From sequence record MT586120.1: DNA of 64,000 bases; one strand, 5' to 3'. The position numbers were made by a program, and so were the translations under genes. Numbering within the stretch: the stretch's first letter is position 1; the number at the start of each line of letters is the position of its first letter. Below the pieces are notes generated by a model, which saw nothing but the letters and a program-made list of their open reading frames with translations, had not been told where the DNA came from and ran no database searches. Shown here piece after piece: positions 8,130 to 60,283 of the stretch.

Positions 8130-8179
8130 GGGGGGTCTTGGCAAAAACCAAGGTTGCCCCCTTTTTTATGTGCTATAAT
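8130..8179 (+). terminator. Terminator followed by an extended -10 promoter (TGCTATAAT, 8171-8179)
   Basis: GGGGG..CTTGG-AAAAA-CCAAGG..CCCCC then a T-tract. Confidence 0.7.
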
Positions 8180-20591: not shown

Positions 20592-20664
20592 TGCTCTGTA
20601 ATTCAATCGGTAGAATGCCAAGCTGTTAACTTGGAGGTTGCAGGTTCGAGTCCTGCCGGAGCAG
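20592..20664 (+). tRNA. tRNA-Asn(GTT)
   Basis: TGCTCTG/CGGAGCA acceptor stem; loop CT-GTT-AA. Confidence 0.93.
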
Positions 20665-20679
20665 TTTAAACTTAATATT

Positions 20680-38449: not shown

Positions 38450-38473
38450 CCCCCTTCGGAAAGGGGTTTTTTT
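38450..38473 (+). terminator. Rho-independent terminator
   Basis: CCCC-TTCGGAAA-GGGG followed by T7. Confidence 0.7.
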
Positions 38474-38504
38474 ATGCTATAATATATAATGTATTATTTG
38501 TGTA

Positions 38505-39380
38505 ATGGTAATGTATCATGAACGTATGAAGTTACGAAAAGATGCTTATTCTAAAAAGTTAGACAATGTAACATCGAGGTGCTATTTTGCAAATGGATTT
38601 GCAACTAGGATTAAAAATATTGTAAGTTGCCACAGAATTGCAAATAACGTTCAAGTTTATTGGGATGCAAATTGTAAACCATTTTACTATAAAAAATTAA
38701 ATGAATACTTCCCTGATCTAGTGGAAACCGATGAGTATGTCTCAAAGACATGGAGACAAGGATGGAGATTAGCCACTTTTCCTGGAGAAATTGGGGAAGG
38801 TTTTTCAAATAAAGACGCAATTTTTGAAGAGTTTGATAGTCCAATTGTTATCCCATCTCATGGAAAGGGTCGTTGTATTGATTATGAATATCATAGAATT
38901 CCCCAACCAATTATCGATGACTATCTTAAAATATTCTCTGAGTTGAGAATTAAAGATTCTTTTCTTGAGACTGCGGATAAGTTTGCTAAGGAAAATTTTA
39001 ATTCTGAAACTGTTTCTGTGCATATTAGAAATTGGGTTGACTTTGCACCTAGAGGAAAAATGCACACCCTATCTCCCTTCATTGACTTGATGGCAGAGCA
39101 TCCAACATCAAAGTTTTTTGTTTCTACGGATAGTCCCAATAATATCAAAATCCTAAAAGAAACGTTTGGTGATGATCGCATTATTAGCTATTGTGGAACA
39201 GATCCATCATTTGATGTCTTTATTGATTTACTTCTCTTATCGAAGAATCGTAATTTAATTGGTTCTGTAATGAGCACTTTTAGTGAAGTTGCTTGGTGGT
39301 TAGGTGAAGCTACGGCAAAGGTTAAAATTGCTTATGGTCCCAAGACAATGAAGTATATGTACCCAAAACATCACATTTAA
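38505..39380 (+). CDS. Putative fucosyltransferase-like glycosyltransferase (GT23/O-FucT-like)
   Basis: VSVHIR, FFVSTDS, DLLLLSK and GSVMSTFS motifs. Confidence 0.55.
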   Translation: MVMYHERMKLRKDAYSKKLDNVTSRCYFANGFATRIKNIVSCHRIANNVQVYWDANCKPFYYKKLNEYFPDLVETDEYVSKTWRQGWRLATFPGEIGEGFSNKDAIFEEFDSPIVIPSHGKGRCIDYEYHRIPQPIIDDYLKIFSELRIKDSFLETADKFAKENFNSETVSVHIRNWVDFAPRGKMHTLSPFIDLMAEHPTSKFFVSTDSPNNIKILKETFGDDRIISYCGTDPSFDVFIDLLLLSKNRNLIGSVMSTFSEVAWWLGEATAKVKIAYGPKTMKYMYPKHHI

Positions 39381-39420
39381 ACCATTTGTGCTATAATGTA
39401 TTTGTAGCAATCCATTTGTA

Positions 39421-40422
39421 ATGAAAGTAGCACTTATTACTGGGATCACGGGGCAAGATGGATCTTACCTAGCTGAACTTCTCCTCCAAAAAGGATATAC
39501 AGTTCACGGTATTATCCGTCGTGCTTCTATGATTAACACCCACAGAATTGACCATATCTTTGACCGCATCACTCTCCATTATGGAGACCTTACCGATGCT
39601 TTGAGTATCGTATCTATTATTAAAACAGTTCAACCAGATGAAATCTATAACCTAGGGGCTCAGAGTCACGTTAAGGTTTCATTTGATCAGCCTGAATACA
39701 CAGCACAGACCGACGCATTGGGCACTCTAAGGGTGCTAGAAGCCGTCCGTCTTCTTGGTATGGAATCATACGTAAGAATCTACCAAGCGAGCACCAGTGA
39801 GCTTTATGGGCTAGTTCAGGAGACACCCCAGAAAGAAACCACTCCAATGTATCCACGATCCCCTTATGGAGTTGCTAAACTATATGGGTTCTGGATCATC
39901 AAAAACTACAGGGAAAGCTATGACATACATGCCTCTAGCGGTATTCTATTCAATCACGAAAGCTCACGCAGAGGAGAGACGTTCGTCACACGCAAGATCG
40001 TCCGAGCCTTGTCCCGAATTAGTGTGGGACTCCAAAGTGATCTACAGCTTGGAAACCTCAATGCCCGACGTGACTGGGGACACGCCAAAGACTACGTAGA
40101 GGCTATGTGGTTGATGCTTCAGCAAGAGAAGCCAGATGATTATGTGATCGCAACTGGTGAGCAGTATTCTGTAAAGGACTTTGTTAATGCTGCAGCACCA
40201 TACTTTGGGTTCAATATTGAATGGAGAGGTGAAGGTCTTGATGAGTTTGGATTCTGTCTCAATACTGGTAGAACAGTTGTAAAAGTCAATCCTAAATATT
40301 TCAGACCCGCAGAAGTAGAAACTCTTCTCGGTGATCCCACTAAAGCAAAGGAAGTTCTTGGATGGACTCCTACTTATACATTTAATGAACTAGTTGAAGA
40401 GATGGTACTTAATGGACAATAA
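39421..40422 (+). CDS. gmd: GDP-mannose 4,6-dehydratase
   Basis: [28 protein letters not shown] and RDWGHAKDY motifs. Confidence 0.97.
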
Positions 40423-41335
40423 TTCCACAGTTGCAATTTTTGGGTCTGGTGGTCTAGCTGGAGGAGCAATCACCAGACAGTTTATAAACAAAAGACATAA
40501 ACTACTACTACCCCGCAGTAAAGATTTAGATTTACGAGAACAAGCTGATGTTCGTGCTTGGTTCAAAGCCAATAAAGTTGATTATGTAATCCTAGCTGCT
40601 GCCCTAGTCGGCGGCATTATGGCTAACAAGACTCGCAAAGCGGAGTTCTTACACGACAATCTAATGATGCAGTGTAATGTAATTGACTCTGCTTACTATT
40701 CAGGTGTTAAGAAGCTCCTATTCCTAGGAACATCTTGCATCTATCCTGCTGGACGCCAACACCCACTAAAAGAAAATGAACTCCTTACGGGGGCTCTTGA
40801 GCCTACTAACGACGCTTACGCCATCGCAAAGATCGCAGGAATCAAACAATGTGACTTCTACAGGGAGCAATATGGATTTGATGCTATCTCTATTATGCCT
40901 CCTAATCTATATGGTCCTGGAGACAATTTCCACGAGGGATCAGGTCACGTCCTCGCATCGTTGATGAACCGCTTCCACAACGCCAAGGTGGCTGGTGAAG
41001 CCACTGTAGCTTGCTGGGGTGACGGAACACCTATGAGAGAGTTTCTCTTCTCTGAAGACCTAGCAGAAGCCTGTGCGTTCTTTATGGATAACTACAGTGA
41101 CTACGGTCACGTCAATGTTGGAACTGGTGAAGACATCACCATCAAACACCTAGCAGAGAGTATTGCAAAGGTTGTTGGTTTTGAAGGAGAGATCCTATGG
41201 GACACTTCAAAACCAAATGGAAATCCTCGCAAATTACTTGACAGCACTGTGGCTAATGAGTTAGGATGGAAGCCCAAGACCAGTTTTGAAGATGGTCTAC
41301 AGAAAACTTACAACTGGTATTTAAACAATGTATGA
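40412..41335 (+). CDS. fcl: GDP-L-fucose synthase / ColC-like epimerase-reductase
   Basis: [21 protein letters not shown] and [10 protein letters not shown] motifs. Confidence 0.93.
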
Positions 41336-42479
41336 TTGGAAATTAATGGATGATACGGTCACACTTCGTGATCGTATGAAGATGGCTAAGTTTGTTCTAA
41401 CTACTAGCCGACTAACACAAGGACCACAAGTTCGTAAATTTGAGGAGCATTGGAGTGACTGGCTTGGAGTTAAACATTCTCTTTTTGTTAGTAGTGGTAG
41501 TACTGCCAACAGTCTTTTGGTATCTGCTTGGAAAGATCTAAATGATATTCCAGATGGTGCAAAGGTTATTGTTCCTGCCTGCACTTGGGTGACTAACATT
41601 GCACCAATCATTCAAAACAATCTAACCCCAGTATTTTGTGATATCAATCTAAAGGACTTTAGCTTTGATATTAGTTCTCTTCAGACTATTGCATGTGAGC
41701 ATAAAGATATCCGGGCAATCTTCGTCACACACCTACTAGGTTTCCCTGCACGGGTAGAGGAGTTTCATAAGATCTTCCCTAACGCAGACATCCTAGAAGA
41801 CGTTTGCGAGAGCCACGGTGCCGTTATTGAAGGTGGGACTATGGCTGGTACATATGATGTAGGAGGGACATTCAGCTTCTACTTTGGTCATCATATGACT
41901 ACTGTTGAGGGTGGCATGGTATCCACTAACAATAGTGATATGTATGACTTGATGCGTATGAAGCGCTCTCACGGTTTATCTCGTGAGTCGGTTCATTCTA
42001 AAGAGTATGCGAAGATGTATCCCGAGATCAATCCACAGTTCCTCTTTATGACTGATGGTTATAACTTCCGTAATAATGAGATTGGTGCTGTATTGGGTCA
42101 GTCTCAACTAAAGCGTTTGGATAATATGATCGTCAAGCGTAATGATAATTATAAGACATACTTCGAGATTGTATCTCTATACTCCCATCTATTCCATGTT
42201 CCTGCTTACATTCCAAATCGTATTAGTAGCTTCTGCTTCCCTCTAATCTCTAGGGACAAAGCAACTCATCTAAGACTACAGGAGTTGTTGACTGAGTATC
42301 GTGTAGAGTATCGCCCAGTTGTAGGTGGAAACTTACTCAAGCAGCCTTTCTTATCTGCTTATCACGCAGACTGCCCTAACGCAGACATCCTCCACGACCG
42401 TGGATTGTATGTTGGAAACAGTCACTTTGTTGGTGTAAGCCACTTACTAATGCTTGAAGAAATTTTGGAGCAACTTTGA
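41328..42479 (+). CDS. PLP-dependent DegT-family enzyme of ColD type (His in place of catalytic Lys)
   Basis: VSSGSTAN, EDVCESHG and SFYFGHHMTTVEGG motifs; 383 aa. Confidence 0.85.
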   Translation: MYDWKLMDDTVTLRDRMKMAKFVLTTSRLTQGPQVRKFEEHWSDWLGVKHSLFVSSGSTANSLLVSAWKDLNDIPDGAKVIVPACTWVTNIAPIIQNNLTPVFCDINLKDFSFDISSLQTIACEHKDIRAIFVTHLLGFPARVEEFHKIFPNADILEDVCESHGAVIEGGTMAGTYDVGGTFSFYFGHHMTTVEGGMVSTNNSDMYDLMRMKRSHGLSRESVHSKEYAKMYPEINPQFLFMTDGYNFRNNEIGAVLGQSQLKRLDNMIVKRNDNYKTYFEIVSLYSHLFHVPAYIPNRISSFCFPLISRDKATHLRLQELLTEYRVEYRPVVGGNLLKQPFLSAYHADCPNADILHDRGLYVGNSHFVGVSHLLMLEEILEQL

Positions 42480-42480
42480 T

Positions 42481-43275
42481 ATGACTATTTCTTTTAATTA
42501 TTTGGGTAACCTGGGACACTTGGGAAACCAAATGTTTCAGTATGCCGCATTGATGGGTCTTAGCTCCAAGTATAATAGAACCTTTTGTATTCCACATCCC
42601 GATACATTTTCAACTGCGAGTTATCAAGAAAATAGAAGCAGTATCTATAGCGCCTTTGATATCAAACCTCCGCATGTTGGGATGAGTAAATTCAAACCAG
42701 TTTCAGAGGCACACTTTCATTTTGATAACAACTTATTTGAGAACCTTCCACCCCAAGATATTGATCTTCGTGGATACTTTCAATGTGAAAAGTGGTTTAA
42801 GCATATTGAAGATGATGTGAGAAAGGCATTCACATTCAAGCCCGAGTATATGGAAGTAGCTCAGTTGATGCGAGATCAGTTAGATGGTGAAGTAATTTCT
42901 CTTCATATTAGAAGAACAGATTACATCACCAACCCAAATCATTACTGTATGCATATGGGTTACTATTTGAAAGCATTAAAAGTTATGCCTTCTGAGCCAA
43001 AGGTAATCATTTTTAGTGATGATACTGAATGGGCAATGGATCAGAAAGAGTTTCCTGATGATAGGTTCCTTGTATCCGAGACAAATTGTCCATACACAGA
43101 TATGGCTCTGATGACTTTATGCGACTACCACATCAATGCAAACAGCTCCTTCTCTTGGTGGGGTTCTTGGCTATCTAACAGCAAGAAAGTAACAGCTCCA
43201 AGTGATTGGTTTTCTGGTCCACTAACTAGTAATAACTTATCTGATATTTATTGTGATGGATGGGAAGTAATCTAA
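42481..43275 (+). CDS. Alpha-1,2-fucosyltransferase-like GT11 (copy 2)
   Basis: GHLGNQMFQYA, SLHIRRTDY and ANSSFSWWG motifs. Confidence 0.88.
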   Translation: MTISFNYLGNLGHLGNQMFQYAALMGLSSKYNRTFCIPHPDTFSTASYQENRSSIYSAFDIKPPHVGMSKFKPVSEAHFHFDNNLFENLPPQDIDLRGYFQCEKWFKHIEDDVRKAFTFKPEYMEVAQLMRDQLDGEVISLHIRRTDYITNPNHYCMHMGYYLKALKVMPSEPKVIIFSDDTEWAMDQKEFPDDRFLVSETNCPYTDMALMTLCDYHINANSSFSWWGSWLSNSKKVTAPSDWFSGPLTSNNLSDIYCDGWEVI

Positions 43276-44045
43276 TGGGAAAAAATTTAGTATGTCAGAT
43301 CTTTTTTGATAAAAAATTGATTACTGATTATAAAGTTCATGAAAAAGATCAGACAAGAGGTGAGGTTGTAACATCTAAACATTTAGATAATGAGTTGTTT
43401 CAACATTCTCAAATACTTGCTAAAAGATACGCAGAGCGTGTAGGTGCGGATTACATCCTATTTGATAAACCACATATCAATTTTTATAATCCATCTCAAG
43501 AAAGATTTAGATTGATGGAAGAAGACCATTGGGCAGAGACATATGATAATATATTATATGTTGACTGTGATGCGTTTATCTACAACGAATGCCCCAATAT
43601 CTTTGAGGAGTATCCACAAGAAAATTTAAGGATTGCTAGGGATATGAACCCAGCTATTCCTAATCAGGAGAATGTAATTGTTAGTGAGGTTGGTCTTGAT
43701 AAAGTGCGCCAATCATATTTCAATGCTGGAATTCTATTGATGCACTCATCCACACTTAGGGAATTAAAAAAGGTCATCAAATATAAGGAAAGATTTTCTC
43801 TCTTACCTTATGGTGATCAGTCCGAGTTAAATTACTGCACATTGAAGTATGACATCCCCCATACAGTAATGGACCAAAGATTCAACTCATATGACAGAGA
43901 TGCATTTATCGGTCATCTATACGGTACGCAAAAGTTTGATGGACTATTCCATAGTGCATATCACCTGAAGAAAGCTAAAGAGCAAGCACTAGGTATCAAA
44001 CCGAAGAAAAAGAAGCTACCATTCACAGTAAAAACTAATTATTAA
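43275..44045 (+). CDS. Glycosyltransferase, GT8-like
   Basis: YVDCD (DxD), YFNAG and GDQSELN motifs. Confidence 0.75.
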   Translation: MGKNLVCQIFFDKKLITDYKVHEKDQTRGEVVTSKHLDNELFQHSQILAKRYAERVGADYILFDKPHINFYNPSQERFRLMEEDHWAETYDNILYVDCDAFIYNECPNIFEEYPQENLRIARDMNPAIPNQENVIVSEVGLDKVRQSYFNAGILLMHSSTLRELKKVIKYKERFSLLPYGDQSELNYCTLKYDIPHTVMDQRFNSYDRDAFIGHLYGTQKFDGLFHSAYHLKKAKEQALGIKPKKKKLPFTVKTNY

Positions 44046-44049
44046 ACCA

Positions 44050-44619
44050 ATGACTGTTGATGTAAACTATTGGAGTACTTTCTACTCATCAAATCACACT
44101 CTAGATTCCTCCAACTTCTGTAGGTTTGTATTAGAGTACTTTAAAAATCAGTCTTCACTACGCATCCTAGATGCTGGCTGTGGTAATGGTAGAGATAGCT
44201 ATGCCCTATCCAAATTACACATAGTAACTGGTATAGATACTGCCGACTATGTTCCTGAGTCAACAGAGACTTGCTCATTTGAGACTGGAGATTTCTGCAC
44301 ACATGATAAAGATTCTTACGATATTGTGTATTCTAGATTTACTCTACACTCAATTACAGATGAGCAACAGGTAGAATTCATCAAGTCTATTGTAAATGCT
44401 GGGACTTTCTTATGCATTGAGTGTAGAAGTGATGGAGACATTGATACTGTAAGGGAGCATGGTGATGACCACTATAGAAACTTTGTAAGCTTTGTTCGCC
44501 TTCAGAGTATATTGTTGGAGAATGGATTTATAGTGCATGTTGCTGAAGAAAGTAGGGGATTTGCACCATACAAAGCAGAAGATCCAGTTTGTGTACGATT
44601 CATTGCGGAGAAAAATTGA
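44050..44619 (+). CDS. Class I SAM-dependent methyltransferase
   Basis: ILDAGCGNGRD and YSRFTLHSI motifs. Confidence 0.88.
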   Translation: MTVDVNYWSTFYSSNHTLDSSNFCRFVLEYFKNQSSLRILDAGCGNGRDSYALSKLHIVTGIDTADYVPESTETCSFETGDFCTHDKDSYDIVYSRFTLHSITDEQQVEFIKSIVNAGTFLCIECRSDGDIDTVREHGDDHYRNFVSFVRLQSILLENGFIVHVAEESRGFAPYKAEDPVCVRFIAEKN

Positions 44620-45149
44620 TGGCAGGTTATCCTGAAAAAGCAGAAAAGCTAAACACCACACTACTCTGGACTCTCGATCTTCTTGAGACTAGAGGTATTG
44701 ATAAGTGGTTTGTATCTTATGGTACTTTATTGGGTTTGATTCGTGATGGATCATGTATTGATGGTGATGATGATGTAGACATCTGCATTGACAAAGATTG
44801 TTGGGATGATGTATATGATCCAATCAAAAAATTGAATAGACTCAATGAGCAGTATGTAAAAGAGAACATTATCATCACCAAAAGAACTGCGACATACTCA
44901 CAAGTAGATTTTTATTGCTGTGATGTAAATGAGCAAGGTGACTTCAATGATACATGGGAAGATGTTATTTGGAGTAGATGCTATAATGAGTCTGACAAAA
45001 TTCCAACCATTGAGTTTCAGGGAAGACATTTGAATGTTCCTCATAATGCAATTGAAAAACTTTCTAAGCGTTATGGTTCTACTTGGAATCAGAGAATCAA
45101 AAGAGGAACTGAAGCCGGAGATGGTTATCGTAAAATAAAAGTATTATGA
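44619..45149 (+). CDS. LicD-family nucleotidyltransferase-fold phosphotransferase
   Basis: YGTLLGLIRDG..IDGDDDVDI motif. Confidence 0.8.
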   Translation: MAGYPEKAEKLNTTLLWTLDLLETRGIDKWFVSYGTLLGLIRDGSCIDGDDDVDICIDKDCWDDVYDPIKKLNRLNEQYVKENIIITKRTATYSQVDFYCCDVNEQGDFNDTWEDVIWSRCYNESDKIPTIEFQGRHLNVPHNAIEKLSKRYGSTWNQRIKRGTEAGDGYRKIKVL

Positions 45150-45964
45150 AAAATGAAGTTATGAGACACGACCTAAAAGACACTACATTTATTATACCTC
45201 TACGCATTGAGAGTGGAGACAGAATGCGTAATGTAATTACTTCATTATGTTATATACTATCAAACTTTGATACTCATATCATTGTAAAGGAGGGTGATAC
45301 CTCTTCTATATTTCTTGAGGATGTTCTTCCACAAGTAAAAGATTTCCTGGAAGTAGATGAGATTCCTAATCTATTACATGTCTTTGAGGACACGAGTGCT
45401 TCTGAGTTCCATAGAACTAGGTATCTTAATGAGATGACTCATATGGCTACAACAAAGGTTGTGGTTAATTATGATTGTGATATCATCCTTCCCGTGGAGT
45501 CCTACATAAAAGCACAGGCAATGATTATTGATGGACCTTCTGATGTGGTCTATCCATATGGATTCGGTAACTATGCTAAAATGGTAACCGTAGATGATTC
45601 AATTGTCTCTGAATTCCTAACTGAAGGATTCAGTATTAATCTCCTAGAAAAAACTACAAAGCTAAACAATGCTCGTTTTGGTTTCTGTCAGTTCTTTGAT
45701 AGAGAGGTTTACATCAGTGGTGGCGGGGAAAACGAAAAGTTCATTGCATATGCTCCTGAAGATGAAGAGAGGGCATTTAGATTTATTACTTTGGGATATA
45801 AAGTAGATCGTATTGATCAATTTGTATATCACCTAGAGCATTCAAGGACACCCAATTCGTGGTATAATAATCCTCATATGCAGAACAATTTTGCCTTATG
45901 GGAAGTTTTACAGAAAATGGACAAGCATCAACTAATTGAGCACTACAACTTATACAATGGATAA
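45146..45964 (+). CDS. Glycosyltransferase (GT-A fold, GT2/GT7-like)
   Basis: VNYDCD, GGENEKFIAYAPEDEE and YHLEH motifs. Confidence 0.78.
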   Translation: MKNEVMRHDLKDTTFIIPLRIESGDRMRNVITSLCYILSNFDTHIIVKEGDTSSIFLEDVLPQVKDFLEVDEIPNLLHVFEDTSASEFHRTRYLNEMTHMATTKVVVNYDCDIILPVESYIKAQAMIIDGPSDVVYPYGFGNYAKMVTVDDSIVSEFLTEGFSINLLEKTTKLNNARFGFCQFFDREVYISGGGENEKFIAYAPEDEERAFRFITLGYKVDRIDQFVYHLEHSRTPNSWYNNPHMQNNFALWEVLQKMDKHQLIEHYNLYNG

Positions 45965-46784
45965 AAACAAAGCAATCGGAAAACTACGAGGAATCCCTAG
46001 GATCTTCTACATAAATCTGGACGACCATACAGAACGTCGTCAGTATATGGAAGACCAGTTTGAATACTGGGGTATTCCTGAGGACAACTATACGAGAGTT
46101 CCTGCCCACGATGGTAGGGGTGATAATGATTTGGGTGATGTCCTAAAAGGTAAGTATCCAGAGCTAATGACTTCCAGTGAAGTTGGATGTACCGTATCAC
46201 ACTTAAAGGCACTTAAGTACTGGGTTGATAACTATCCAGAGGAAGAGTATCTTGTGGTTATGGAAGATGATTGTGACATTTCAACAGCTGGCTACTGGGG
46301 CTTTACATGGAATGATTTTGCGCGTAAAGTACCTTATCACTTTGATGTAATTCAACTTGCCGTCATCAATCCCATTGAGATTAATGTTAAGCTTCATCTG
46401 AGATTCGTCAATGACTTCTCAACTGCCTGCTATATTATCCGTAAGCATCACGCAGAGAAGTTAGTCAAACTTCATTGTCGTGGTGATAAGTATAAGCTTG
46501 ACCAGAACGTTAAGCCTCGTGCTGTTGCTGATGACTTAATCTACAACTCTGGTTTATCCTTTGCTATCCCCCTGTTCTTATATAAGATTGCTTTGGGTTC
46601 TAGCATCCATGATATTCACGTGAATACATTCCACAAAAGTAGTCATGATGGTCTATGGCAGTTCTGGAAAGAACAAGCACCAACCATCCCAGATTGGTCA
46701 CAGTTCTTTGAGTATGATCCATACTATGGGACACTTCCACCCAGCCTAGTTGCTAAACAAGCTATCGAAGACCATAATAAATAA
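45957..46784 (+). CDS. Glycosyltransferase, GT25-like
   Basis: YINLDDHTERR, EVGCTVSH and VMEDD motifs. Confidence 0.8.
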   Translation: MDKNKAIGKLRGIPRIFYINLDDHTERRQYMEDQFEYWGIPEDNYTRVPAHDGRGDNDLGDVLKGKYPELMTSSEVGCTVSHLKALKYWVDNYPEEEYLVVMEDDCDISTAGYWGFTWNDFARKVPYHFDVIQLAVINPIEINVKLHLRFVNDFSTACYIIRKHHAEKLVKLHCRGDKYKLDQNVKPRAVADDLIYNSGLSFAIPLFLYKIALGSSIHDIHVNTFHKSSHDGLWQFWKEQAPTIPDWSQFFEYDPYYGTLPPSLVAKQAIEDHNK

Positions 46785-46822
46785 GGTAGCAGGAACTAAA
46801 AAAATACACTCTTCTTTATATT

Positions 46823-51022
<4,200 letters not shown>

Positions 51023-51056
51023 ATAAGATATATCAAAGTACTGATACCATTACATC

Positions 51057-53240
51057 ATGGCAGCCTTTAATTTTCCAGCAAACCCAAGTGTAGGGGACCA
51101 AGTAACCAATGGAGGAGTTACTTATACTTGGGATGGTTACAAATGGAACACCACAACCGCACCATTTAGTGTAGGTGCTACTGGTGCTACGGGTCCATTG
51201 GGGTTTGGTATCTATGCCTTTTGTAGGACTACATCTACTGGTGTCTTACTTCCAAATTATGGTAGTGGTATTTTAGGTGTAAACAGAGTATCAACGGGTG
51301 TTTATAGATATACACTTTCTCAACCATATAATAGCGCGGATTATATGGCTCAGGTTTCATTAGTATCCTCGGGTAATATTAATCCATCCGATTGGAATGT
51401 TATTGTTGAAAATATTACACCAACAACATTTGATGTATTCACATATAGAGCAAACAATACTCCAATCAACCTAGAACACGCCGTTACTGTATATGGTGTA
51501 GATGGTCCTACAGGTACTGGTAGTGCCTATCAGTCTTGGTTGGAAGTTGGTAACTTTGGAACAGAACAGGATTTCATCAATTCACTACAAGGTCCTACAG
51601 GAGGATCTGGTGGGCAAGGCAGCACTGGTGCTACTGGTCCCATTGGTCCCAATGGAGCCACTGGTCCCCAAGGTTTGGATGGAACATCCGTTGCTCTAAA
51701 AGGTACGGTTGATGATGCTAGTGACCTACCATCAATCCCAGGTACTGTTGAGGGTGATTTGTATGTTGTTCTTAATACTGGTGGTGGTTTTAATGCTGGT
51801 GATGGTGCTGTAAAAAATGACCTAACCACAGGCACTCTGGCTGATTGGAGTAATGTAGGTCCTCTACAAGGTCCTCAAGGAAATATCGGTCCAATAGGCG
51901 CAACTGGTCCCATAGGTTCTACTGGTCCCCAAGGTATTCCTTCTACTGATGGTGGCTTCTTTGTTCTTTCAGGTGAGAGAAGCGGACCTCCCGCTCTTAA
52001 TCAATTCTTTGCGTGGGGTAATGGAGACAGTGCTGATAATGGAGTTCAAATCCAGGAAGGATGTTTCCTTGATTATGTTTCTATAACAGCAGAAAGACCA
52101 TTTGGAACTATTCCAGTTGAAGTTACTGCCTATGTAAATGGATCTGCTACTATAGTTAAAGCTATTGGTACCACTGGATCAAAAACATCAACATCATCTG
52201 GTAGCCCTGTTGAGATTTTCCCAGGAGATTATGTAAATATTAGATGTTCTCAAACTGGTAACAACTCAACTGCTGGCGGAACTGTTGGTGGTTGTGTGGG
52301 TTCACTACTATTCTCTACCGCAGGTGCGCGTGGTGCTACTGGAGAGCAAGGTCCTCCTGGTCCCCCTGATGGCGCTACTGGTGATACTGGTCCTGTAGGT
52401 CCTCTTGGTCCTGTTGGTCCTACTGGTCCTCTTGGTGCTACTGGTCCCGTTGGTCCTACTGGTATTGGTGCTCCTGGTCCTGATGGTCCCACTGGAGCTA
52501 CTGGTCCTAATGGTCCTGCTGGTCCCGTTGGTACTGTTGTGTTGGGTACTGTTGCTGATATTGCTAGCCTGCCCCCATCTGCTAATGTTGGTGAAGGTTT
52601 TGTAGTAACTGCCGAAGCTAATGATGTATATGTTTGGAATGGTTCTTCCTGGAATAGTATTGGACCAGTTCAAGGTCCCGAAGGTCCTGCTGGTCCTGCT
52701 GGTCCTCAAGGTGCTACTGGTATTAAAGAGCAGTCTTATATCAAGTCAACATTCCTAACCGAGTCAACTGTAAACTCATCAACAACATTCCAGTCATTCA
52801 ACATACTCAATGATTCTGCTATCCTTGAAGCAGGTGGATATAGATATGCCGCAGAGATACCTGGAAGACAAGGTATTGGTGCTGGTGGTATTATTGTCCC
52901 AGAAACTGGGATCTATATGATTACTGCCTCACTATACTTCACAACACCTAGTGTGCAGAGAGCTAGTATTGGATTGAGATTTGCTATCGCAGAACTAGCA
53001 GATCCAGAAAATACAAATGCCGAGGGAGTTGCTTTACCAGAAACAGGAGCTATGGGATACATTAGATCTGGTTCAGGTCATAATGAAGCATCAGTCACCC
53101 TTACAACTATCGCTAGCTTGGAAGTAATTCCTGGTGTTAGGGAAGATCAGGTTCAAATACAGTTGGCTAGATTGGCTTCGAGTGGTACTGTTAGTGTAGA
53201 AGCTAATCGTAGTATTATTACCATTACAAAAATTGCCTAA
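51057..53240 (+). CDS. Collagen-like fibre protein with C1q-like C-terminus
   Basis: FPANPSVGD...YTWDG N-terminus; GATGP repeats; GIYMITASL motif. Confidence 0.78.
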
Positions 53241-53266
53241 ATATTTTATGAAGAATAAAGTATGAT

Positions 53267-53857
53267 ATGGCTATACAAATACACCGAGGGATATTGGGGT
53301 CACATTCTCCTTTGATTTTATTCACGGGAAGAGCATCAGATGGAACCACTTCCGCTAATGGGGCAAATAGAATAAATGGGATAAGCGTACAGTATAATAC
53401 TGATGATGCAGACTATGTTGATGTTATTGATGATAGTTTGACCACTTCAAACAATCATACAACATTTGATTTATATAAAGTTCATTATAGTGAATGGTTG
53501 GATATTGATGGTAATTCTTTTGGCTCTGCCGAGAATGTTGTTCAGTATATTGAGCAACAAATAACAGCATCCCAAGACCGGATATCATTTTCTCAAGCAA
53601 CAGCACACACACTTACTGGTATTCCAGAGACCGTCAGTGCTTCTGTTGGTGTTGCATTCACATATAATGCAAACTACTACAATGGCGTTTCATACTTCTG
53701 GGATGAGGAATCTTTCCCATCTGGTGTGGAAGTTTCTCGTTATGATCGGAGGAGGATTAGTGGTATCGTCACACAGACCGGTTCATATACAATCAACTTC
53801 CAAGTAGCAAATCACAATGGGACTATCCCAACTAGCGTGATTGTTGATGTAACCTAA
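53267..53857 (+). CDS. Hypothetical protein with Ig-like C-terminal domain
   Basis: FPSGV...ISGIVTQTGSYTINFQVANHNG resembles He_PIG-type Ig repeats. Confidence 0.55.
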   Translation: MAIQIHRGILGSHSPLILFTGRASDGTTSANGANRINGISVQYNTDDADYVDVIDDSLTTSNNHTTFDLYKVHYSEWLDIDGNSFGSAENVVQYIEQQITASQDRISFSQATAHTLTGIPETVSASVGVAFTYNANYYNGVSYFWDEESFPSGVEVSRYDRRRISGIVTQTGSYTINFQVANHNGTIPTSVIVDVT

Positions 53858-53900
53858 AAGATGTGCTATAATATCCAGGTACTTAACAAAAGATCATATT

Positions 53901-54017
53901 ATGTTCGGTTTTACTCCTGAAGCAGAAATCCTTAATGCTCGTCTAGCAATGCTAGGTTTCGTCATCGCAGTCGGAACCTACGCAACTACTGGTCAAATTA
54001 TCCCCGGCGTATTCTAG
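53901..54017 (+). CDS. hli: High-light inducible protein (not in ORF track)
   Basis: MFGFTPEAEILNARLAMLGFVIAVGTYATTGQIIPGVF; chlorophyll-binding ExxNxRxAM motif; TGCTATAAT upstream. Confidence 0.93.
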   Translation: MFGFTPEAEILNARLAMLGFVIAVGTYATTGQIIPGVF

Positions 54018-54050
54018 GATACAGTCTAAAAAAAACTAAATAGATATAAT

Positions 54051-54076
54051 AAGAGGGATGTATACCCTCTTTTTTT
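54051..54076 (+). terminator. Rho-independent terminator
   Basis: AAGAGGG-ATGTATA-CCCTCTT followed by a T-tract. Confidence 0.8.
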
Positions 54077-54183
54077 GTAGGGAAAAATAATGGTCTTATT
54101 GCTTTGCTTCTTACCCCTTATAATAATCTTTATATTAATGAAGTTTATTTTATTGGTAGAAGAGTCCCATAAAGAAATTACCT

Positions 54184-54390
54184 ATGTACGACAAGAACCA
54201 ACCAGAGAACGAACATTTTTGGAAAACGTCTATGAAGACCTTGATGGCGAGGAAGATTGTGATTGATATTGAGGAGAAACTCCCAGGTCTCCTTGATGAG
54301 TGGTACCGTGAGCACGGACTAGATACTCCACCGTGGAGACAAAATAAGCCATACTTTGATGATGATGGAAACATCATCAGACCTGATTAG
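54184..54390 (+). CDS. Hypothetical protein
   Basis: 68-aa ORF. Confidence 0.5.
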   Translation: MYDKNQPENEHFWKTSMKTLMARKIVIDIEEKLPGLLDEWYREHGLDTPPWRQNKPYFDDDGNIIRPD

Positions 54391-54426
54391 ATATAAATAT
54401 CTCTGAAGAGAAGATTATATCTTACA

Positions 54427-55980
54427 ATGTCTCAAATTATATTCCCGAGTAACCCATCAGTTGGTGAATTTTATAATGTGGGTGATGTTACATATAAGTG
54501 GGATGGATCTAAATGGATCTCTACCAGCGTAGCCCCAGTAAATATTGGAGCAACTGGACCATCTGGTCCTGCTGGACCTACTGGAGCTACAGGATCAACT
54601 GTTGTTGATGGTAGTGATATCTCTGCTGGTGTAGTGACCGCAACAGAATTTGACGGTAATCTCAGTGGAAATGTCGCTGGCGATACTACTGGTATCCATA
54701 ATGGGGATGTATATGCTAGAGATGGATCTAAAATTATATTAGAAACTGCTATTAATAATGGTGATACAGCACACTATACAGGCACAGTAACTGGCGACGT
54801 AACTGGAGATACAACAGGAACACATTACGGAACCAATACCGGTCAGCAGCACGGAGATGTGTACACCAATGACGGTGGTCAGCAAGTCATAGATACTGCT
54901 GCTATTCCATCTCCCCTATTCAAAGGTGATGCGGAAGGTTTAGATGGTGACCCAAATATACAAGTAACTAACCTAACAGTAGTTGGCTTAACTAATGTTG
55001 GCGTTGTAACTGCTGCCGAAATAACTACAGATGATCTTAATGCTGATAGTGTAATTGCTGGGTTTGTTACATCAGTAAACTCATATACTAGTGGAATCGC
55101 TACTGCTGGAAAGTTTTATGGTGATGGTTCAAACCTAACTGGAATAGCAACACAGTCTGGTGCTACTGGAGCCACTGGTCCCCAAGGTTCTCAAGGTGCT
55201 ACTGGTATTCCTGGTCCTTTTGGTCCATATGGAATCACAGGAGCTACTGGTGCAACTGGTGTTGATGGTCCTGTTGGTTCTACTGGAGCCACAGGTGATC
55301 CTGGTTTAGCTGCTATGTGCTTCACATATAGGTATGATAGTGATACTGATACTAACGATGAGCCATTGAGTGGTCGCATCAGCTTCAACAATTCAAACCC
55401 AGAAAATGCAACTGTTATTGCGATCAATGATACTAATGGAGATGCTGTTGATATCTCAAACTTCTTTGGTCTATTTGGTGCTGGATCTAAAGTTTATATT
55501 CAAGAGGAGAGAGATGCTAGTAGCTTTATTCTTCTCACACTAAACGCAGGAGCTTCTGATCAAGGTGGTTGGTATAAGTTCACCAACTTTACAGTCAACA
55601 TATCTGGTAATGTTACCTTTACTAACCTCAATAAGTTGATGGTTTGTGTTCAGCCACAAGGTCCAGCTGGTCCAACGGGCGCAACGGGTCTTACTGGAGC
55701 TGGAACTTCGGCAACATCATTCCAGTGGAACGATCATATCATCCCAGATTCAACGGAGTCTTATGATATAGGTTCAGCAGAATATAAAGTTCGCCACCTA
55801 TTTTTAAGTGATAACTCTGTTTATACTGATAGTGGGGAGGTTAGAGTTGGCTTCTCAACCCAAGTTGGAACATCAACCAAGATGCTAAAAGGAACAAAAC
55901 TACAAGAGATTGTGGCTAATTCTGTTGACTTCGCAGACTTTAAAGTTAAGATGGCTTCGGAGGATTTTGGTTCCTTATGA
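54427..55980 (+). CDS. Fibre-like structural protein with short collagen segments
   Basis: FPSNPSVGE...YKWDG N-terminus; GATG repeats; [14 protein letters not shown] motif; late promoter at 54392. Confidence 0.7.
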
Positions 55981-56024
55981 ATGGAGTATAAATAACCTTA
56001 GGGAATCCATAGTATTATTACAAG

Positions 56025-59000
56025 ATGGCTTACAAGATTAATGGCGTCATTCGCTTAGCAGATAACGGAGACGCAAATTTAGGTTTAGTAACCGCAACCA
56101 ATATTAACTCCACTGGTGTAGCCACGGCTACGGAGTTTGATGGTAAGGTATCAAAGAAGGCTATAACCGAGCAGACCGAAGGTGATGATTCTAATGTTAC
56201 TGGTGCCGATGAACTTCTAATTTATGATCAACAGACCGATTCCCTATTAAGAGTGTCTGTTGATGATTTTATTAGTGCGTCTGGTATTGGTACTTTAGTT
56301 AATGATTTTAATCATATTGATAGTGACTCACTAGTCGTAACTGGACTATCAACTATTGGTGGAGTTGAGATTGGTGCTGGTATTATTACAGCATCTGCAG
56401 GGGTTGGAGTTGTAACATTCTATGGTGATGGTAGTAATTTAGAAGGAGTTATTACTACACCTTCCATTGTTTCTACCACAGAGCCAACCACTAGACCCAA
56501 TGGTGATGACCTAGAACAGGGTGACCTATGGTTCTCTAGTGCTGCTGGCGAAGGGCAATTAAGACAATATACTTATTATAATGGTGCTTGGATTGATTCC
56601 AACCCAATGAATGGTGGTACTTCTGTATATGCTGCAGTAGCTGGTGTATCTACTAATGTAAATGGAACTGGAATTGTAACTGCTAGCCAAGGTAATTTTA
56701 GTGGTATTGTAACTGCAGGTTCTTTTATTGGCGATGGGTCAGGTCTAACTGGTTTAGGTGATTTGACTGGAGCCACTGGTGCAACTGGTGCAGATTCAAT
56801 TGTTCCAGGTCCCCAAGGTTCTACTGGTGCTACTGGTCCTAAAGGTGATCAAGGTGATGCAGTAATTGGAGCCACTGGATCCACTGGTCCCCAAGGAGAT
56901 ATTGGTGCTTCTGGTGCTACTGGTCCTAAAGGAGACCAAGGTGATGCCGTAATTGGTGCTACTGGCGCTACTGGTGACCAAGGTGATGAGGGTCCTGTAG
57001 GAGCTTCTGGTGCTACTGGTCCCAAAGGTGACCAAGGTGATGCAATTATTGGTGCTACTGGCGCTACTGGTGACCAAGGTGATGAGGGTCCTGTAGGAGC
57101 TTCTGGTGCTACTGGTCCCAAAGGTGACCAAGGTGATGCAGTAATCGGTGCTACCGGTCCTCAAGGTGATATTGGTGCCTCTGGTGCAACTGGTCCTCAA
57201 GGTGATATTGGTGCCTCTGGTGCTACTGGTCCTAAAGGAGACCCAGGTTCTGCTGGGGTTTCTGCTACATTAACAGCAGGTACATATCTATCCGGTGATT
57301 CATATAACGGCAGCACTAGTAGAACTTGGACAGTAGATGCTACTTCATCAAATACTGCGTCTAAAGTTGTTGCTAGAGATGCTAGTGGTAATTCTAGTTT
57401 TAAGAAAATAACAGTAGATACTGATTCCGATACTGATGGACAGGTAGCTGCACATTTCTATGGTGCGAATGGGTCTACGAATCGCGGTCTTGAAGTACGC
57501 CTTTCTTCGGCGGGTTCTATAGATAATGCTAAGGTTATTTTAGATGCCAAACAAGCTGCAGATGGTGAACTTTGGATTGCTACTAGGGGTGTAGAAAGAG
57601 CTGCATTTGATAGTGGATCTTTTAAAATGGGTGCGAATGTTGGCACTTCGCCAGAAGTTCTGATTAATAGCTCTGGTGATGCCACCTTCGCTGGCGATAT
57701 CACCGCAGCTAGTTTTAGTGGTGATGGTTCTGGTCTAACCAACCTACCTGGTGGTGGTAGTCCCGGAGATCCTTCTGCTGCTTCTGCTGATAAACTAACA
57801 ACATCTAGAACCTTATGGGGTCAAAGCTTTGATGGTACTGCTAATGTATCAGGTAATCTTACTGGTGTGACCAATATTACCTTATCAGGTACTGTTGATG
57901 GTCGTAATGTATTGGATGATGGTCAAGCTGGTGATAACCTAATAACATTAAGTGGTGTTGCTCGCGATGCTACTAATCTAGGAACCTTCACAGGCGCTAC
58001 TATTTCTGATAATGACACCATTAAAGGAGCTTTACAAGACCTAGAGACCGCATTGGAATCAACTCCAGGCTCTCCCAGCGGTCCTACTGGTGGTGAGGCA
58101 GATAGTCTATTGCTAGCAGCACGTAATAGTACCAATGCAACTCACTATCTAACATTCGCAACCGCACGGACTGGACAGCAGTCTCAATATACTGATACTG
58201 GATTAACATATAACCCAAGCACAAATACTCTTAGTGCAACATTTAGTGGTAATGGTTCTAGTCTAACTTCACTCAATGCATCTAATCTTGGTTCTGGAAC
58301 CATTCCCAACGATAGATTCCCTGCTGTATTACCAACAGTTAGTGGAGAAAATCTAACTAACTTACCTGGTAGTGGATCCCCAGGCGCTCCTGGTGCCGCT
58401 ACGATTGCAGTAACTGACGAATCATCTGACACAGAAAACTTCCTAGTATTCACTAATGATGCTGTAGGTAATGAGCTTCCAAAGACTGGAAGTAATTTAA
58501 CATTTAATGCATCTACAGGACGGCTAACAGCCACTAGCTTTAGTGGTAATGGTTCTAGTCTAACTTCACTCAATGCATCTAATCTTAGTTCTGGAACCAT
58601 TCCCAACGATAGATTCCCTGCTATATTACCAGTAGCTGATGGTTCTAACTTAACTAACATTAGTCGTTCTGACGTATCAACTAGTGTACAAGTAATTACA
58701 AATAATACTGCTAACGAAACTGTATTTATTACCTTTTCTGACGGTCAATCAGGAACCCAAAGAATAGAAACTGATGTCGATCTTACTTACAATCCTTCGA
58801 CAAATACTCTCAGTGCAACATTCTCTGGTAATGGTTCTAATCTAACTAACCTAACTTCAGGTAACCTAGTGGGTGCTTTGCCTGCTATTGATGGTTCTTC
58901 TCTTACTGGAATTAATGCAGCAAAGGATGGTATATTCTACGAAAACGGCACAAATGTTACGCAGAATTATACAATCACTTCAGGCAAAAATGCTATGAGT

Positions 59001-59072
59001 GCTGGTCCAATCACTATTAATACCGGAGTAACCGTAACAGTTCCTACTGGATCTGAGTGGACAGTTGTGTAA
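56025..59072 (+). CDS. Tail-fibre-like protein with collagen tract and repeated fibre modules
   Basis: GATG repeats; 96-nt tandem units at 56955 and 57051; F.GNGS.LT.L repeats; C-terminal [28 protein letters not shown]. Confidence 0.78.
58242..58622 (+). repeat. 84-nt direct repeat (58242-58325 and 58539-58622, one mismatch)
   Basis: Both copies encode [16 protein letters not shown](G/S)[11 protein letters not shown]. Confidence 0.9.
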
Positions 59073-59515: not shown

Positions 59516-60283
59516 ATGGCTAAAGGATTTACCGTCAAAGCAAAAGAACCACCCAAGGGTAAGGTTGCTGATCAAGTTGAAGAGTGGGATTATGCAAAGG
59601 CAAAGGAGATGCTCAGAGGTAAGAGCATTGTTTTCTGCCTCCCTGGTCGTGGCGTAAGCTATACCTACCTAAAGAACTTTGTTCAAATGTGTTTTGACCT
59701 AGTTCAAATGGGAGCATCTATTCAGATCTCTCAAGACTACAGTTCAATGGTCAACTTTGCACGTTGTAAGTGTCTTGGTGCTAACGTTCTACGTGGACCC
59801 GACCAGATTCCCTGGGACGGTAAGCTTAAGTATGACTACCAGCTCTGGATTGATAGCGACATCGTATTCAACACCCAGAAGCTACTCCAACTCGTTCTTA
59901 TGGACAAGGACATTGCTACTGGTTGGTACTCTACTGAAGATGGTCGCACCACTTCCGTAGCTCACTGGCTAGAAGAAGATGACTTCGCCAAGAACGGTGG
60001 TGTTATGAACCACGAAATGGTTGAAGGAATCTCCAAGCGTAAGAAGCCTTTCACTGTTGACTATGCTGGCTTCGGTTGGATCCTACTTAAGAACGGTGTG
60101 TTTGAGCACCCCGAGATGAAGTACCCCTGGTTCGCTCCCAAGATGCAAGTCTTTGATTCAGGCGCTGTACAAGATATGTGTGGTGAAGATGTTAGCTTCT
60201 GCCTAGATGCTATCGCTGCTGGCTTTGAGATCTGGTGTGATCCTCGCATCCGCGTAGGACACGAAAAGACCCGAGTCATCTGA
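59516..60283 (+). CDS. Conserved cyanophage glycosyltransferase-like protein (GT-A fold)
   Basis: LWIDSDIVF, GEDVSFC and CDPRIRVGH motifs. Confidence 0.75.
   Translation: MAKGFTVKAKEPPKGKVADQVEEWDYAKAKEMLRGKSIVFCLPGRGVSYTYLKNFVQMCFDLVQMGASIQISQDYSSMVNFARCKCLGANVLRGPDQIPWDGKLKYDYQLWIDSDIVFNTQKLLQLVLMDKDIATGWYSTEDGRTTSVAHWLEEDDFAKNGGVMNHEMVEGISKRKKPFTVDYAGFGWILLKNGVFEHPEMKYPWFAPKMQVFDSGAVQDMCGEDVSFCLDAIAAGFEIWCDPRIRVGHEKTRVI

Follow-up and report, generated by a model that had tools for sequence, protein, structure and literature searches.

The largest marine cyanophages owe much of their extra DNA to islands of sugar genes, whose role has been guessed at since 2005. In the marine cyanophage Synechococcus phage S-CAM7, one such island runs into genes for collagen-like fibres, raising the question of what its enzymes glycosylate: the surface of the host, or the phage's own virion. 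S-CAM7 is in culture on WH7803, a tractable host, and deletion variants of it are available from nature and from the laboratory; because it carries both the island and fibres resembling BclA, it is a good system in which to decide between host-surface remodelling and virion glycosylation. We analysed a 64,000-nucleotide stretch of its genome, here called the window (window position equals MT586120 position minus 124000). We explain this stretch best as two modules with separate promoters, combined as a mosaic within the hli-linked hypervariable region of a T4-like cyanophage. Gene identities, modelled fold, motif layout with its conservation, and distribution among genomes could be read directly, and from them we infer the glycan acceptor.

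Gene content of the island and fibre stretch

Gene calls and Pfam matches bore out the initial annotation's observation that a ten-gene sugar cluster (38505-46784) directly precedes four collagen-like fibre genes. Neighbouring genes are separated by 4 to 44 nt or overlap. As a correction to that annotation, an hli gene intervenes between fibres 2 and 3. The features, all on the + strand, are as follows.

20638-21204, +: 2OG-Fe(II) oxygenase (PF13640), a generic multicopy cyanophage gene, counted outside the system
38451-38483, +: terminator-like hairpin and T-run, then extended -10 box TGCTATAAT 30 nt before 38505
38505-39380, +: fucosyltransferase-superfamily enzyme (NodZ/FUT8/POFUT-like; family profile against PDB, protein atlas lead)
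39389-39397, +: extended -10 box 32 nt before gmd, at 29-33 nt in relatives L005-L008
39421-40422, +: GDP-mannose 4,6-dehydratase, Gmd (TIGR01472, 539.7 bits against a cut-off of 415)
40394-41335, +: GDP-fucose synthase/GDP-colitose synthase-like epimerase-reductase, Fcl/ColC-like (NF047922, 422.9 bits, under the cut-off of 500)
41328-42479, +: ColD-type GDP-4-keto-6-deoxymannose 3-dehydratase (2gms, E 1.6e-49; His-His active site)
42454-43275, +: GT11, alpha-1,2-fucosyl/colitosyl-transferase family (PF01531, 1.8e-23)
43260-44045, +: GT8-like transferase, weak (PF01501, 2e-4, below cut-off)
44050-44619, +: SAM-dependent methyltransferase
44589-45149, +: LicD-like phospho-transferase (PF04991, 2.4e-6; NF045866, 1.1e-12)
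45146-45964, +: probable GT-A galactosyltransferase-like enzyme (phrog_1721, PHROG galactosyl transferase, 4.8e-6; Pfam GT7C, 0.024)
45936-46784, +: GT25 glycosyltransferase, conserved last gene of cyanomyovirus sugar islands (PF01755, 6.3e-12)
46823-51022, +: fibre 1, with coiled-coil N-terminus, long Gly-X-Thr collagen, inner globular domain and TNF/C1q-like head; late motif 45 nt upstream
51057-53240, +: fibre 2, collagen tracts and TNF/C1q-like head; late motif 37 nt upstream
53267-53857, +: 196-aa ORF, weak PKD match; late motif 29 nt upstream
53864-54071, +: early-type unit of extended -10 box, hli (53901-54017) and terminator-like hairpin
54427-55980, +: fibre 3, collagen-like; TATAAATA 35 nt upstream
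56025-59072, +: fibre 4, collagen tract with Gly-Pro-Lys triplets and a long repeat-rich C-terminal part; TATAAATA 38 nt upstream

The island thus comprises a GDP-colitose/fucose pathway, about five glycosyltransferases, a methyltransferase and a LicD-like enzyme, its ten reading frames all intact and tightly packed or overlapping. The protein at 38505 had no Pfam match; a profile of its family (22 homologues) compared with the PDB matched NodZ (4.3e-9), FUT8 (1e-5) and POFUT1 (5e-5), which places it in the fucosyltransferase superfamily. The Gmd of the GDP-L-colitose pathway was recognised at 39421 above the model's cut-off. The best solved relative of the dehydratase at 41328 is E. coli WbdK/ColD, whose His-His aligns with a His-His pair at the aminotransferase PLP-lysine position. 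Since the reductase at 40394 scores below the cut-off of the Fcl model, its product could be fucose, colitose or both. None of the ten proteins has a hydrophobic segment, so all are predicted to be soluble, and flippase, polymerase and ligase genes are absent from the island. The Gmd-Fcl-ColD-GT25 backbone retains 65-93% identity across diverged phages, and natural variants have its central part exchanged or lost. Homologues of the GT25 occur in 98 phage records; a pattern-limited search of picocyanobacterial genomes found no close relative.

All four fibres scored over the cut-off for Pfam Collagen (PF01391), with 146, 45, 28 and 48 Gly-X-Y triplets in fibres 1-4. Threonine, annotated initially as dominating the Y position, is indeed its commonest residue across the four fibres (85/146, 14/45, 15/28 and 14/48). 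The C1q/BclA-like heads proposed for two of the fibres agree with the fold modelled for those at 46823 and 51057: the AF2 model (pLDDT 79.6) gave a TNF/C1q jelly-roll, in fibres 1 and 2 only, and Foldseek matched it at E about 1e-7 to 4-1BBL, EDA, C1QL and Bacillus ExsFA/BxpB. Pfam BclA_C was sub-threshold on these heads (19.2 bits against a cut-off of 38; BclA_C and TNF both about 1e-3, below cut-off), and comparison with a protein atlas led to BclA_C clusters. By analogy, fibres 1-4 are best explained as accessory fibres built like Bacillus BclA around a putatively triple-helical Gly-X-Thr stalk, with a predicted trimeric TNF/C1q-type head on two of the four. Hydroxylysine glycosylation of the animal or mimivirus type (GT25 with lysyl hydroxylase) was considered and rejected, lysine occupying Y only in fibre 4 (5/48).

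Promoters and distribution among genomes

Each of the five genes from 46823 to 56025 has the T4-type late motif TAAATA 29-45 nt upstream, and the motif is missing in front of all ten island genes, against a density expectation of 2.7% per gene. The five thus show the TATAAATA-like motif that characterises T4-type late genes, where it stands about 30-45 nt ahead of the start codon, and its positions are kept in the uncultured relatives L005, L006 and L008. The extended -10 box, by contrast, stands about 30 nt before 38505 and 39421, and likewise before the RNR small-subunit gene. Because these promoters are sigma-70-like, the island would probably be transcribed early, by unmodified host polymerase. 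The claim that island and fibres are directly coupled is weakened by this comparison, their promoter types being different and both conserved. The same split recurs elsewhere: in S-CAM7, ACG-2014f and P-SSM2, GT4/2OG genes behind collagen genes carry extended -10 boxes and the collagen genes themselves late motifs, so the split does not discriminate between host and virion as the target.

Taking GT25 as the island marker in a panel of 34 complete cyanomyovirus genomes (S-CAM7 and 33 others), we found it in 16. Collagen genes occurred in 4/16 GT25-positive and 0/18 GT25-negative genomes (Fisher p=0.039), an association fully confounded with genome size, as collagen-bearing genomes are all at least 216 kb and GT25-negative ones all below 200 kb. 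Co-occurrence, named initially as a check, holds in one direction only: in this panel collagen is restricted to GT25-bearing genomes, but 12 of these 16 have no collagen gene at all. Of 31 GT25 loci from IMG/VR that continue downstream for 5 kb or more, 5 contained a collagen ORF.

Direct adjacency of GT25 and collagen is confined to S-CAM7-like contigs; the four collagen fibre genes immediately behind GT25 are unique in comparison with the LPS clusters of other large cyanophages. The order GT25-fibre 1-fibre 2 is kept in four diverged uncultured relatives (L005-L008) with fibre-1 identities of 34-48%, and another contig, L023, has a fibre-1-like gene and a Gly-Val-Thr repeat ORF about 2-4 kb after GT25. 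Elsewhere the two are far apart: the collagen genes of ACG-2014f and P-SSM2 are found towards the other end of the record, about 150-170 kb from the island when counted along it (for ACG-2014f, a circular record, about 70 kb if counted through the origin), and those of S-SCSM2R are about 27 kb away from the closest copy of GT25. Threonine at Y is equally common in island-distant collagens. In ACG-2014f, P-SSM2 and S-T4, GT25 closes the island and is followed by hli, ferredoxin and psbA; ACG-2014f and P-SSM2 have a large fibre-like gene with a late promoter 1-3 kb beyond the island, and no large late gene lies near that of S-T4. The S-CAM7 island, starting with gmd and epimerases, ending with GT25 and adjoining hli, has the form of the LPS clusters described near hli03 of cyanophages (PMC3037559). 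Separately, a contig from an RNA library spans the GT25/fibre-1 junction; it may be DNA.

A second collagen locus in S-CAM7 consists of two collagen genes followed by two GT4 genes and a 2OG oxygenase, and in ACG-2014f GT4 and a 2OG oxygenase directly follow the collagen genes; collagen-linked GT4 was found in 2/4 collagen-bearing and 0/30 collagen-free genomes. This placement suggests that cyanophage collagens are modified. The S-CAM7 collagen-GT4-2OG locus is a better candidate fibre-modifying module than the island. The 2OG hydroxylase annotated at 20680 is present as an oxygenase gene with corrected bounds (20638-21204), but its suggested role in collagen modification was not upheld: the family has 5-9 copies in collagen-free cyanophages and is not collagen-specific. 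As a generic PF13640 gene, it was likewise rejected as a PLOD-type collagen hydroxylase.

Candidate acceptors of the island glycan

The reading we favour, with a probability of roughly 40%, is that the island remodels the host envelope glycan. Gmd, ColD and the ColC/Fcl-like reductase would make GDP-colitose and possibly GDP-fucose; about five transferases (NodZ/FUT8-like, GT11, GT8-like, GT-A and GT25), with the methyltransferase and LicD-like enzyme, would then build a short decorated oligosaccharide, the island acting as a soluble, cytoplasmic glycan-building module. Its acceptor would be non-collagen, as for the 12 islands in collagen-free genomes, and our preferred candidate is a lipid-linked host LPS/LOS-type core that would be built at the inner membrane face and exported by host machinery, so altering or masking the receptor during the long latent period. 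Island and fibres would then lie side by side because each of the two modules follows the same host surface. The gene identities point this way, GT25, GT8, LicD and GT11 forming the LOS/LPS outer-core decoration set of Haemophilus, Neisseria and Helicobacter and colitose being known from O-antigens, as do the lack of hydrophobic segments, flippase, polymerase and ligase, the rarity of collagen beside GT25 (12/16 genomes without it; 5/31 IMG/VR loci with it), the promoter split and the swapped island middle. Further support comes from the conserved neighbours hli, ferredoxin and psbA, shared with hli03-linked LPS clusters (PMC3037559), and from host resistance to S-CAM7, which maps to galE/LPS (bioRxiv 10.64898/2026.10.08.757702). 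Several observations pull the other way: collagen genes occur only in island-bearing genomes, fibre order behind GT25 is kept despite low fibre-1 identity, the promoter split is shared with collagen-GT4/2OG loci, and the picocyanobacterial search gave no close GT25 relative. Moreover, the soluble transferases and sugar-nucleotide pathways of lytic viruses with proven targets (chloroviruses, mimivirus, mycobacteriophages) glycosylate virions, not host envelopes, and the proven phage O-antigen modifiers we know of are membrane proteins of temperate phages. The mycobacteriophage precedent is that of Freeman et al. 2023 as cited in PMC12801897. Modification of the temperate-phage gtrABC/oac type was rejected for the island, in which no protein has a hydrophobic segment.

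That the island enzymes instead act on the collagen fibres of the phage itself, O-glycosylating threonine at Y while the fibres are still unassembled in the cytoplasm, to give a BclA-like glycosylated 'nap' on the virion, is doubtful, though a serious contender; in a variant, the GT4 of the other collagen locus might start a glycan that island enzymes extend. The fuller claim, that in S-CAM7 and its relatives the island decorates the Thr-rich collagen stalks of BclA-like virion fibres with methylated O-glycans that contain colitose/fucose, is unlikely. The fibre glycosylation proposed in the initial annotation retains part of its basis: a good analogy with BclA in Gly-X-Thr collagen, TNF/C1q head and adjoining deoxysugar genes, soluble enzymes throughout, and gaps of 38 nt and 34 nt in an adjacency kept in L005-L008, to which may be added the L023 genes, the 4/16 against 0/18 distribution, the kinship of the 38505 family with protein O-fucosyltransferases as well as NodZ, the GT4 and 2OG genes behind collagens and the possibly DNA-derived junction contig. 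It is weakened by separate promoters, the 12/16 collagen-free islands, distances of tens of kb or more in ACG-2014f, P-SSM2 and S-SCSM2R, the size confounding, and a Y-position threonine content as high in island-distant collagens and prokaryotic collagens generally. Nor did we identify any protein-O-glycosyltransferase hallmark in the island; the collagens already have a dedicated GT4, and colitose is, to our knowledge, not known on proteins. Fibre sugar-coating by island enzymes is therefore plausible but unproven, the island occurring mostly in genomes without a collagen gene and having its own promoters. It is improbable that other virion proteins (capsid, tail or non-collagen fibres) are the targets, with collagen at most one acceptor among several: islands in collagen-free genomes, the late fibre-like genes near those of ACG-2014f and P-SSM2, and the lytic mycobacteriophages and chloroviruses that glycosylate virion proteins would fit, but we identified no candidate acceptor and S-T4 has no large late gene nearby. 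The S-SCSM2R virion proteome also speaks against it, 0/23 reported proteins being named glycosyltransferase and no glycosylation being reported (PMC12801897). Quite improbable is the absence of any functional link, sugar and fibre genes being independent cargo with little selected function at a recombination hot spot. The hot spot near hli03 is documented and 'stuffer' DNA has been raised for the variable region (PMC3037559), the island middle is swapped or deleted in natural variants, and large variable-region deletions arise during S-CAM7 laboratory evolution (bioRxiv 10.64898/2026.10.08.757702); yet ten intact, packed frames, a conserved gmd promoter box and the 65-93% identical backbone argue against this reading.

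Were host LPS changed, as we favour, a lytic marine phage would be shown to mask its receptor. Glycosylated fibres would be without precedent in cyanophages and would lead to a different annotation of these islands; if this were true of S-CAM7 and its relatives, the long-puzzling sugar islands of marine T4-like phages would be systems for glycosylating the virion, not host-surface modifiers.

Comparison with known systems

The closest counterparts of the island are the LPS clusters of P-SSM2, S-SSM7 and S-SM2, whose function is putative: they occupy the same genome position near hli03, share the first gene gmd and the last gene GT25 (54-62% identical), and have GT11 and epimerases in common with it, whereas S-CAM7 and near relatives differ in having the ColD-type dehydratase (colitose route), NodZ/FUT8-like enzyme and LicD. 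In Haemophilus, Neisseria and Helicobacter, the outer-core enzymes Lic2/LpsA (GT25), LgtC (GT8), LicD and FutC (GT11) are soluble or peripheral, use lipid-linked acceptors and have no export genes of their own; S-CAM7 has the same four families, a likeness at family level only. With the E. coli O55/O111 GDP-L-colitose pathway (Gmd, ColD, ColC) it shares a Gmd equivalog and the ColD His-His motif, although its reductase scores as Fcl below cut-off.

Chlorovirus enzymes expressed early act on late virion proteins, and in Bacillus anthracis rhamnose/anthrose deoxysugar genes lie close to the BclA collagen gene. BclA likewise joins a Gly-X-Thr collagen stalk to a TNF/C1q-type trimeric head (modelled in S-CAM7); its glycosylation is proven, with dTDP-rhamnose/anthrose as sugars, whereas the sugars predicted for S-CAM7 are GDP-colitose/fucose. 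The BclA glycan is described in PMC10050317 and PMC6222408. Giant viruses (mimivirus fibrils and collagen, chlorovirus Vp54; PMC9614988) also combine Gmd-type pathways, transferases and collagen-like genes, but they are eukaryotic viruses with unrelated enzymes, and mimivirus collagen is modified on hydroxylysine. Virion O-glycosylation in mycobacteriophages (Freeman et al. 2023, as cited in PMC12801897) likewise involves soluble transferases of a lytic tailed phage; the genes for these belong to the late structural operon, and the enzymes act on capsid and tail-tube proteins, at their C-terminal tails. The S-CAM7 island stands next to fibre genes with an early-type promoter of its own, a layout repeated at the collagen-GT4-2OG locus, and includes a full sugar-nucleotide pathway; host envelope glycan and the fibres are its candidate acceptors.

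The S-CAM7 glycan island and its neighbouring fibres

Over the window, identity to the MT586120 record of Synechococcus phage S-CAM7 is 100%, with window positions running 124000 below those of the record. At this locus S-CAM7, a T4-like cyanomyovirus of 221 kb with host WH7803, carries an island for building a colitose/fucose glycan, with early-type promoters, beside late, BclA-like accessory fibres in a hypervariable hli region:

38505-46784, island of ten sugar-pathway and transferase genes
45936-46784, GT25 transferase gene, the last of the island
46823-51022, collagen-like fibre 1
51057-53240, collagen-like fibre 2
53267 (start), further ORF with a late motif
53864-54071, self-contained hli unit (extended -10 box, 38-aa gene, terminator-like hairpin)
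54427-55980, collagen-like fibre 3
56025-59072, collagen-like fibre 4

ORF listing and family scans of the window confirmed the run of sugar-pathway, glycosyltransferase, LicD and methyltransferase genes that the initial annotation had placed ahead of the fibres. The scans identified 39421 as a clear Gmd equivalog and 40394 as an Fcl/ColC-like reductase; the closest solved relative of the DegT-fold protein 41328 is the colitose enzyme ColD (2gms, E 1.6e-49), whose His-His at the aminotransferase PLP-lysine position is kept in the alignment. There follow GT11, weak GT8-like, methyltransferase, LicD-like, probable GT-A (45146) and GT25 genes. The product of 38505, described earlier as an upstream glycosyltransferase, has no Pfam match; a profile built from 22 metagenomic homologues matched NodZ, FUT8 and POFUT1 in a search against the PDB, which places it in the fucosyltransferase superfamily. 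All ten island proteins lack membrane-like segments. Glycosylation of DNA was rejected as a role, GDP-deoxyhexose enzymes and the transferase families present appearing unsuitable for it.

Metagenome DNA contigs join the endpoints of 42542-45679 and of 43264-45191, one with 37 additional letters at the join; in natural populations of S-CAM7-like phages the gmd-colD genes and GT25-fibre 1 are thus retained, and the transferase genes in the middle are exchanged or lost. Beyond the fibres, a 255-aa ORF at 59516-60283 has a weak PHROG glycosyltransferase match (4.4e-5) and no Pfam match, and may be a further transferase. A 421-aa cytidylyltransferase-like gene at 21669-22934 belongs to the cyanophage-core family T4-GC190, which has been detected in S-SM1 virions (PMC3037559).

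The proposed Thr-rich collagen tracts were borne out: all four fibre genes matched Pfam Collagen, and Thr is the commonest Y residue, occupying 58%, 31%, 54% and 29% of triplets in fibres 1, 2, 3 and 4. For the C-terminal domains of fibre 1 and fibre 2 we built an alignment that included orthologues from uncultured relatives, and then modelled the domains with AlphaFold2; the heads (pLDDT 79.6) matched TNF/C1q jelly-roll proteins, Bacillus exosporium ExsFA/BxpB among them. Sub-threshold Pfam matches to BclA_C and TNF agree with this model, as does the protein atlas, so that the C1q/BclA-like ends ascribed to two fibres hold for these two. Hydroxylysine-type collagen glycosylation was discarded, Lys occurring at Y in fibre 4 only (5/48) and the 2OG oxygenase being a generic PF13640 gene. 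In total S-CAM7 has six collagen-like fibre genes. Its binding to type IV pili is commoner (median 70%) than that of S-PM2 and S-RSM4 (43-44%), in which our genome scans found no collagen genes; the extra S-CAM7 fibres may mediate binding to the host type IV pilus.

Promoter architecture of island and fibres

The initial annotation had called island and fibres directly coupled. Physically this stands, with intergenic gaps of 38 (GT25 to fibre 1), 34 (fibre 1 to 2), 26 (fibre 2 to 53267) and 44 nt (fibre 3 to 4), but their promoter types differ and the two are probably not coupled in regulation. All five genes that start at 46823 to 56025 have a T4-type late core (TAAATA) 29-45 nt upstream; none of the ten island genes has one, and motif density predicts one for 2.7% of genes. 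Upstream of 38505, a terminator-like hairpin is followed by an extended -10 box, TGCTATAAT; gmd has an identical box 32 nt ahead of it, and the RNR small-subunit gene and the hli gene (53901) are preceded by this box as well. Both motif classes hold their position in uncultured relatives with a fibre 1 of just 34-48% identity. The locus thus alternates early-type and late-type units. The self-contained hli unit standing between late fibres 2 and 3 shows that the fibre genes were inserted into an hli hot spot.

A TG(C/T)TATAAT box recurs at 8171, 30282, 37481, 38475, 39389, 53864 and 63762, often directly after a hairpin and T-run and, at five of the seven sites, with a start codon some 30 nt downstream; this cassette has the look of a standard early-type promoter for this phage. 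No RNA run from an infection time course was found to contain this DNA. One RNA-library contig crosses the GT25/fibre-1 junction; it may be DNA, and metatranscriptome contigs are uninformative on timing.

Islands and collagens across cyanophages

GT25, the conserved last gene of cyanomyovirus islands, is present in 98 phage records. IMG/VR, where primase matches were mostly short contigs, yielded 80 loci with a GT25 relative, 31 of them with at least 5 kb of downstream DNA; a collagen ORF lies downstream in 5/31, namely four uncultured S-CAM7-like contigs (L005-L008), in which a fibre-1 homologue begins directly after GT25, and locus L023. The latter carries, about 4 kb after GT25 and behind a fibre-1-like gene, a 1113-aa ORF (L023:14835-18176) with some 250 triplets, of which 183 are Gly-Val-Thr; this ORF may not be a true collagen helix. 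Downstream of the island, ACG-2014f, P-SSM2 and S-T4 have hli, ferredoxin and psbA rather than collagen genes, which agrees with the position close to hli03 given for 'LPS clusters' in the literature (PMC3037559).

Co-occurrence of islands and collagens, which the initial annotation had suggested checking, was found in one direction. We scanned 34 complete genomes whole with Pfam Collagen and Pfam GT25: collagen occurs in 4 of the 16 GT25-positive genomes (S-CAM7, ACG-2014f, P-SSM2, S-SCSM2R) and in 0/18 GT25-negative ones (Fisher p=0.039, lineages not being independent), but is absent from the other 12 GT25-positive genomes (S-T4, S-SSM7, S-SM2, S-SCSM1, B23, Bellamy, P-TIM68, S-SRM01 and four complete uncultured). 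A regular-expression scan likewise found no collagen in S-T4 (whole genome) or S-PM2 (191 of 196 kb). Collagen-bearing genomes are all at least 216 kb and GT25-negative ones all below 200 kb; the association is one-sided and fully confounded with genome size. The main collagen genes lie near the record start in ACG-2014f (13.6-15.6 kb) and P-SSM2 (19-26 kb), and the islands at about 161-171 kb and 193-205 kb; the ACG-2014f record being circular, the shorter way round from its island to its collagen genes is about 70 kb. S-SCSM2R has its collagen gene some 27 kb away from the closest copy of GT25. These distant collagens carry Thr at Y as often as the window's fibres do.

In a pattern-limited search of 185,579 prokaryote genomes, a single-protein GT25 query found no match and an alignment query only four short MAG contigs (52-60% identity), labelled Verrucomicrobiales, Methanobacteriota, Ignavibacteriaceae and Bacteroidota; these contigs, from unrelated phyla, are probably cyanophage DNA binned by mistake.

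A second collagen locus and the acceptor of the island glycan

Outside the window, at about 12.9-20.4 kb of S-CAM7 NC_031927.1 (L119, L179), two Thr-rich collagen genes, of 995 and 640 aa, have a late motif; next, behind an extended -10 box, come genes for two GT4-type transferases and one PF13640 oxygenase. The counterpart locus has a collagen, a small ORF, a GT4 and an oxygenase in ACG-2014f, and collagens, a tail-fibre chaperone-like gene and an oxygenase in P-SSM2; in all three phages late-promoter collagen genes precede enzyme genes with the extended -10 box. The first S-CAM7 GT4 (L179:838-1908) is 86% identical to its ACG-2014f orthologue (NC_026927.1 17331-18398) and has no relative in the other 32 cyanomyovirus genomes; since primases of the two phages are 62% and GT25 67% identical, sequence comparison suggests that it was recently exchanged or is under strong constraint. 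The 2OG oxygenase of the window (20638), put forward earlier as a possible collagen modifier, was dropped as a collagen hydroxylase: with 5-9 family copies in five collagen-free phages, it is uninformative.

We tentatively propose, at a probability of about 0.4, that the island would remodel an LPS/LOS-type glycan of the host, in view of its set of enzyme families, its O-antigen sugar, the islands in collagen-free phages and the LPS receptor. A preprint names galE, an LPS gene, as the route of WH7803 resistance to S-CAM7, and reports that many changes in laboratory evolution of this phage were large deletions in variable regions (bioRxiv 10.64898/2026.10.08.757702). Sullivan 2005 noted both collagen-like ORFs and LPS clusters in P-SSM2, proposed a host-surface change and left the two unlinked (PMC1079782); later papers retained host-surface or DNA-modification readings (PMC7029224, PMC12801897).

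That the window island instead glycosylates the fibres is somewhat doubtful. Adjacency kept within one clade and the one-sided co-occurrence speak for it, as do the BclA analogy and the precedent in other lytic viruses. The promoter split is no timing argument against fibre modification, because the same layout recurs at the second collagen locus. This locus supports the general idea of enzymatically modified cyanophage collagens, shows that this idea does not depend on the window island and is a better candidate for fibre modification than that island. Our literature search found no report of cyanophage virion glycosylation; virion proteomes are published for collagen-free phages and for S-SCSM2R, where 23 proteins were detected and the text is silent on whether a collagen protein is among them (PMC12801897). 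Other virion acceptors for the glycan seem improbable, and a mere neighbourhood, with no selected link between island and fibres, slightly more so.

Fibre glycosylation would be a notable novelty if confirmed by chemistry; the components of island and fibres themselves belong to kinds already known.
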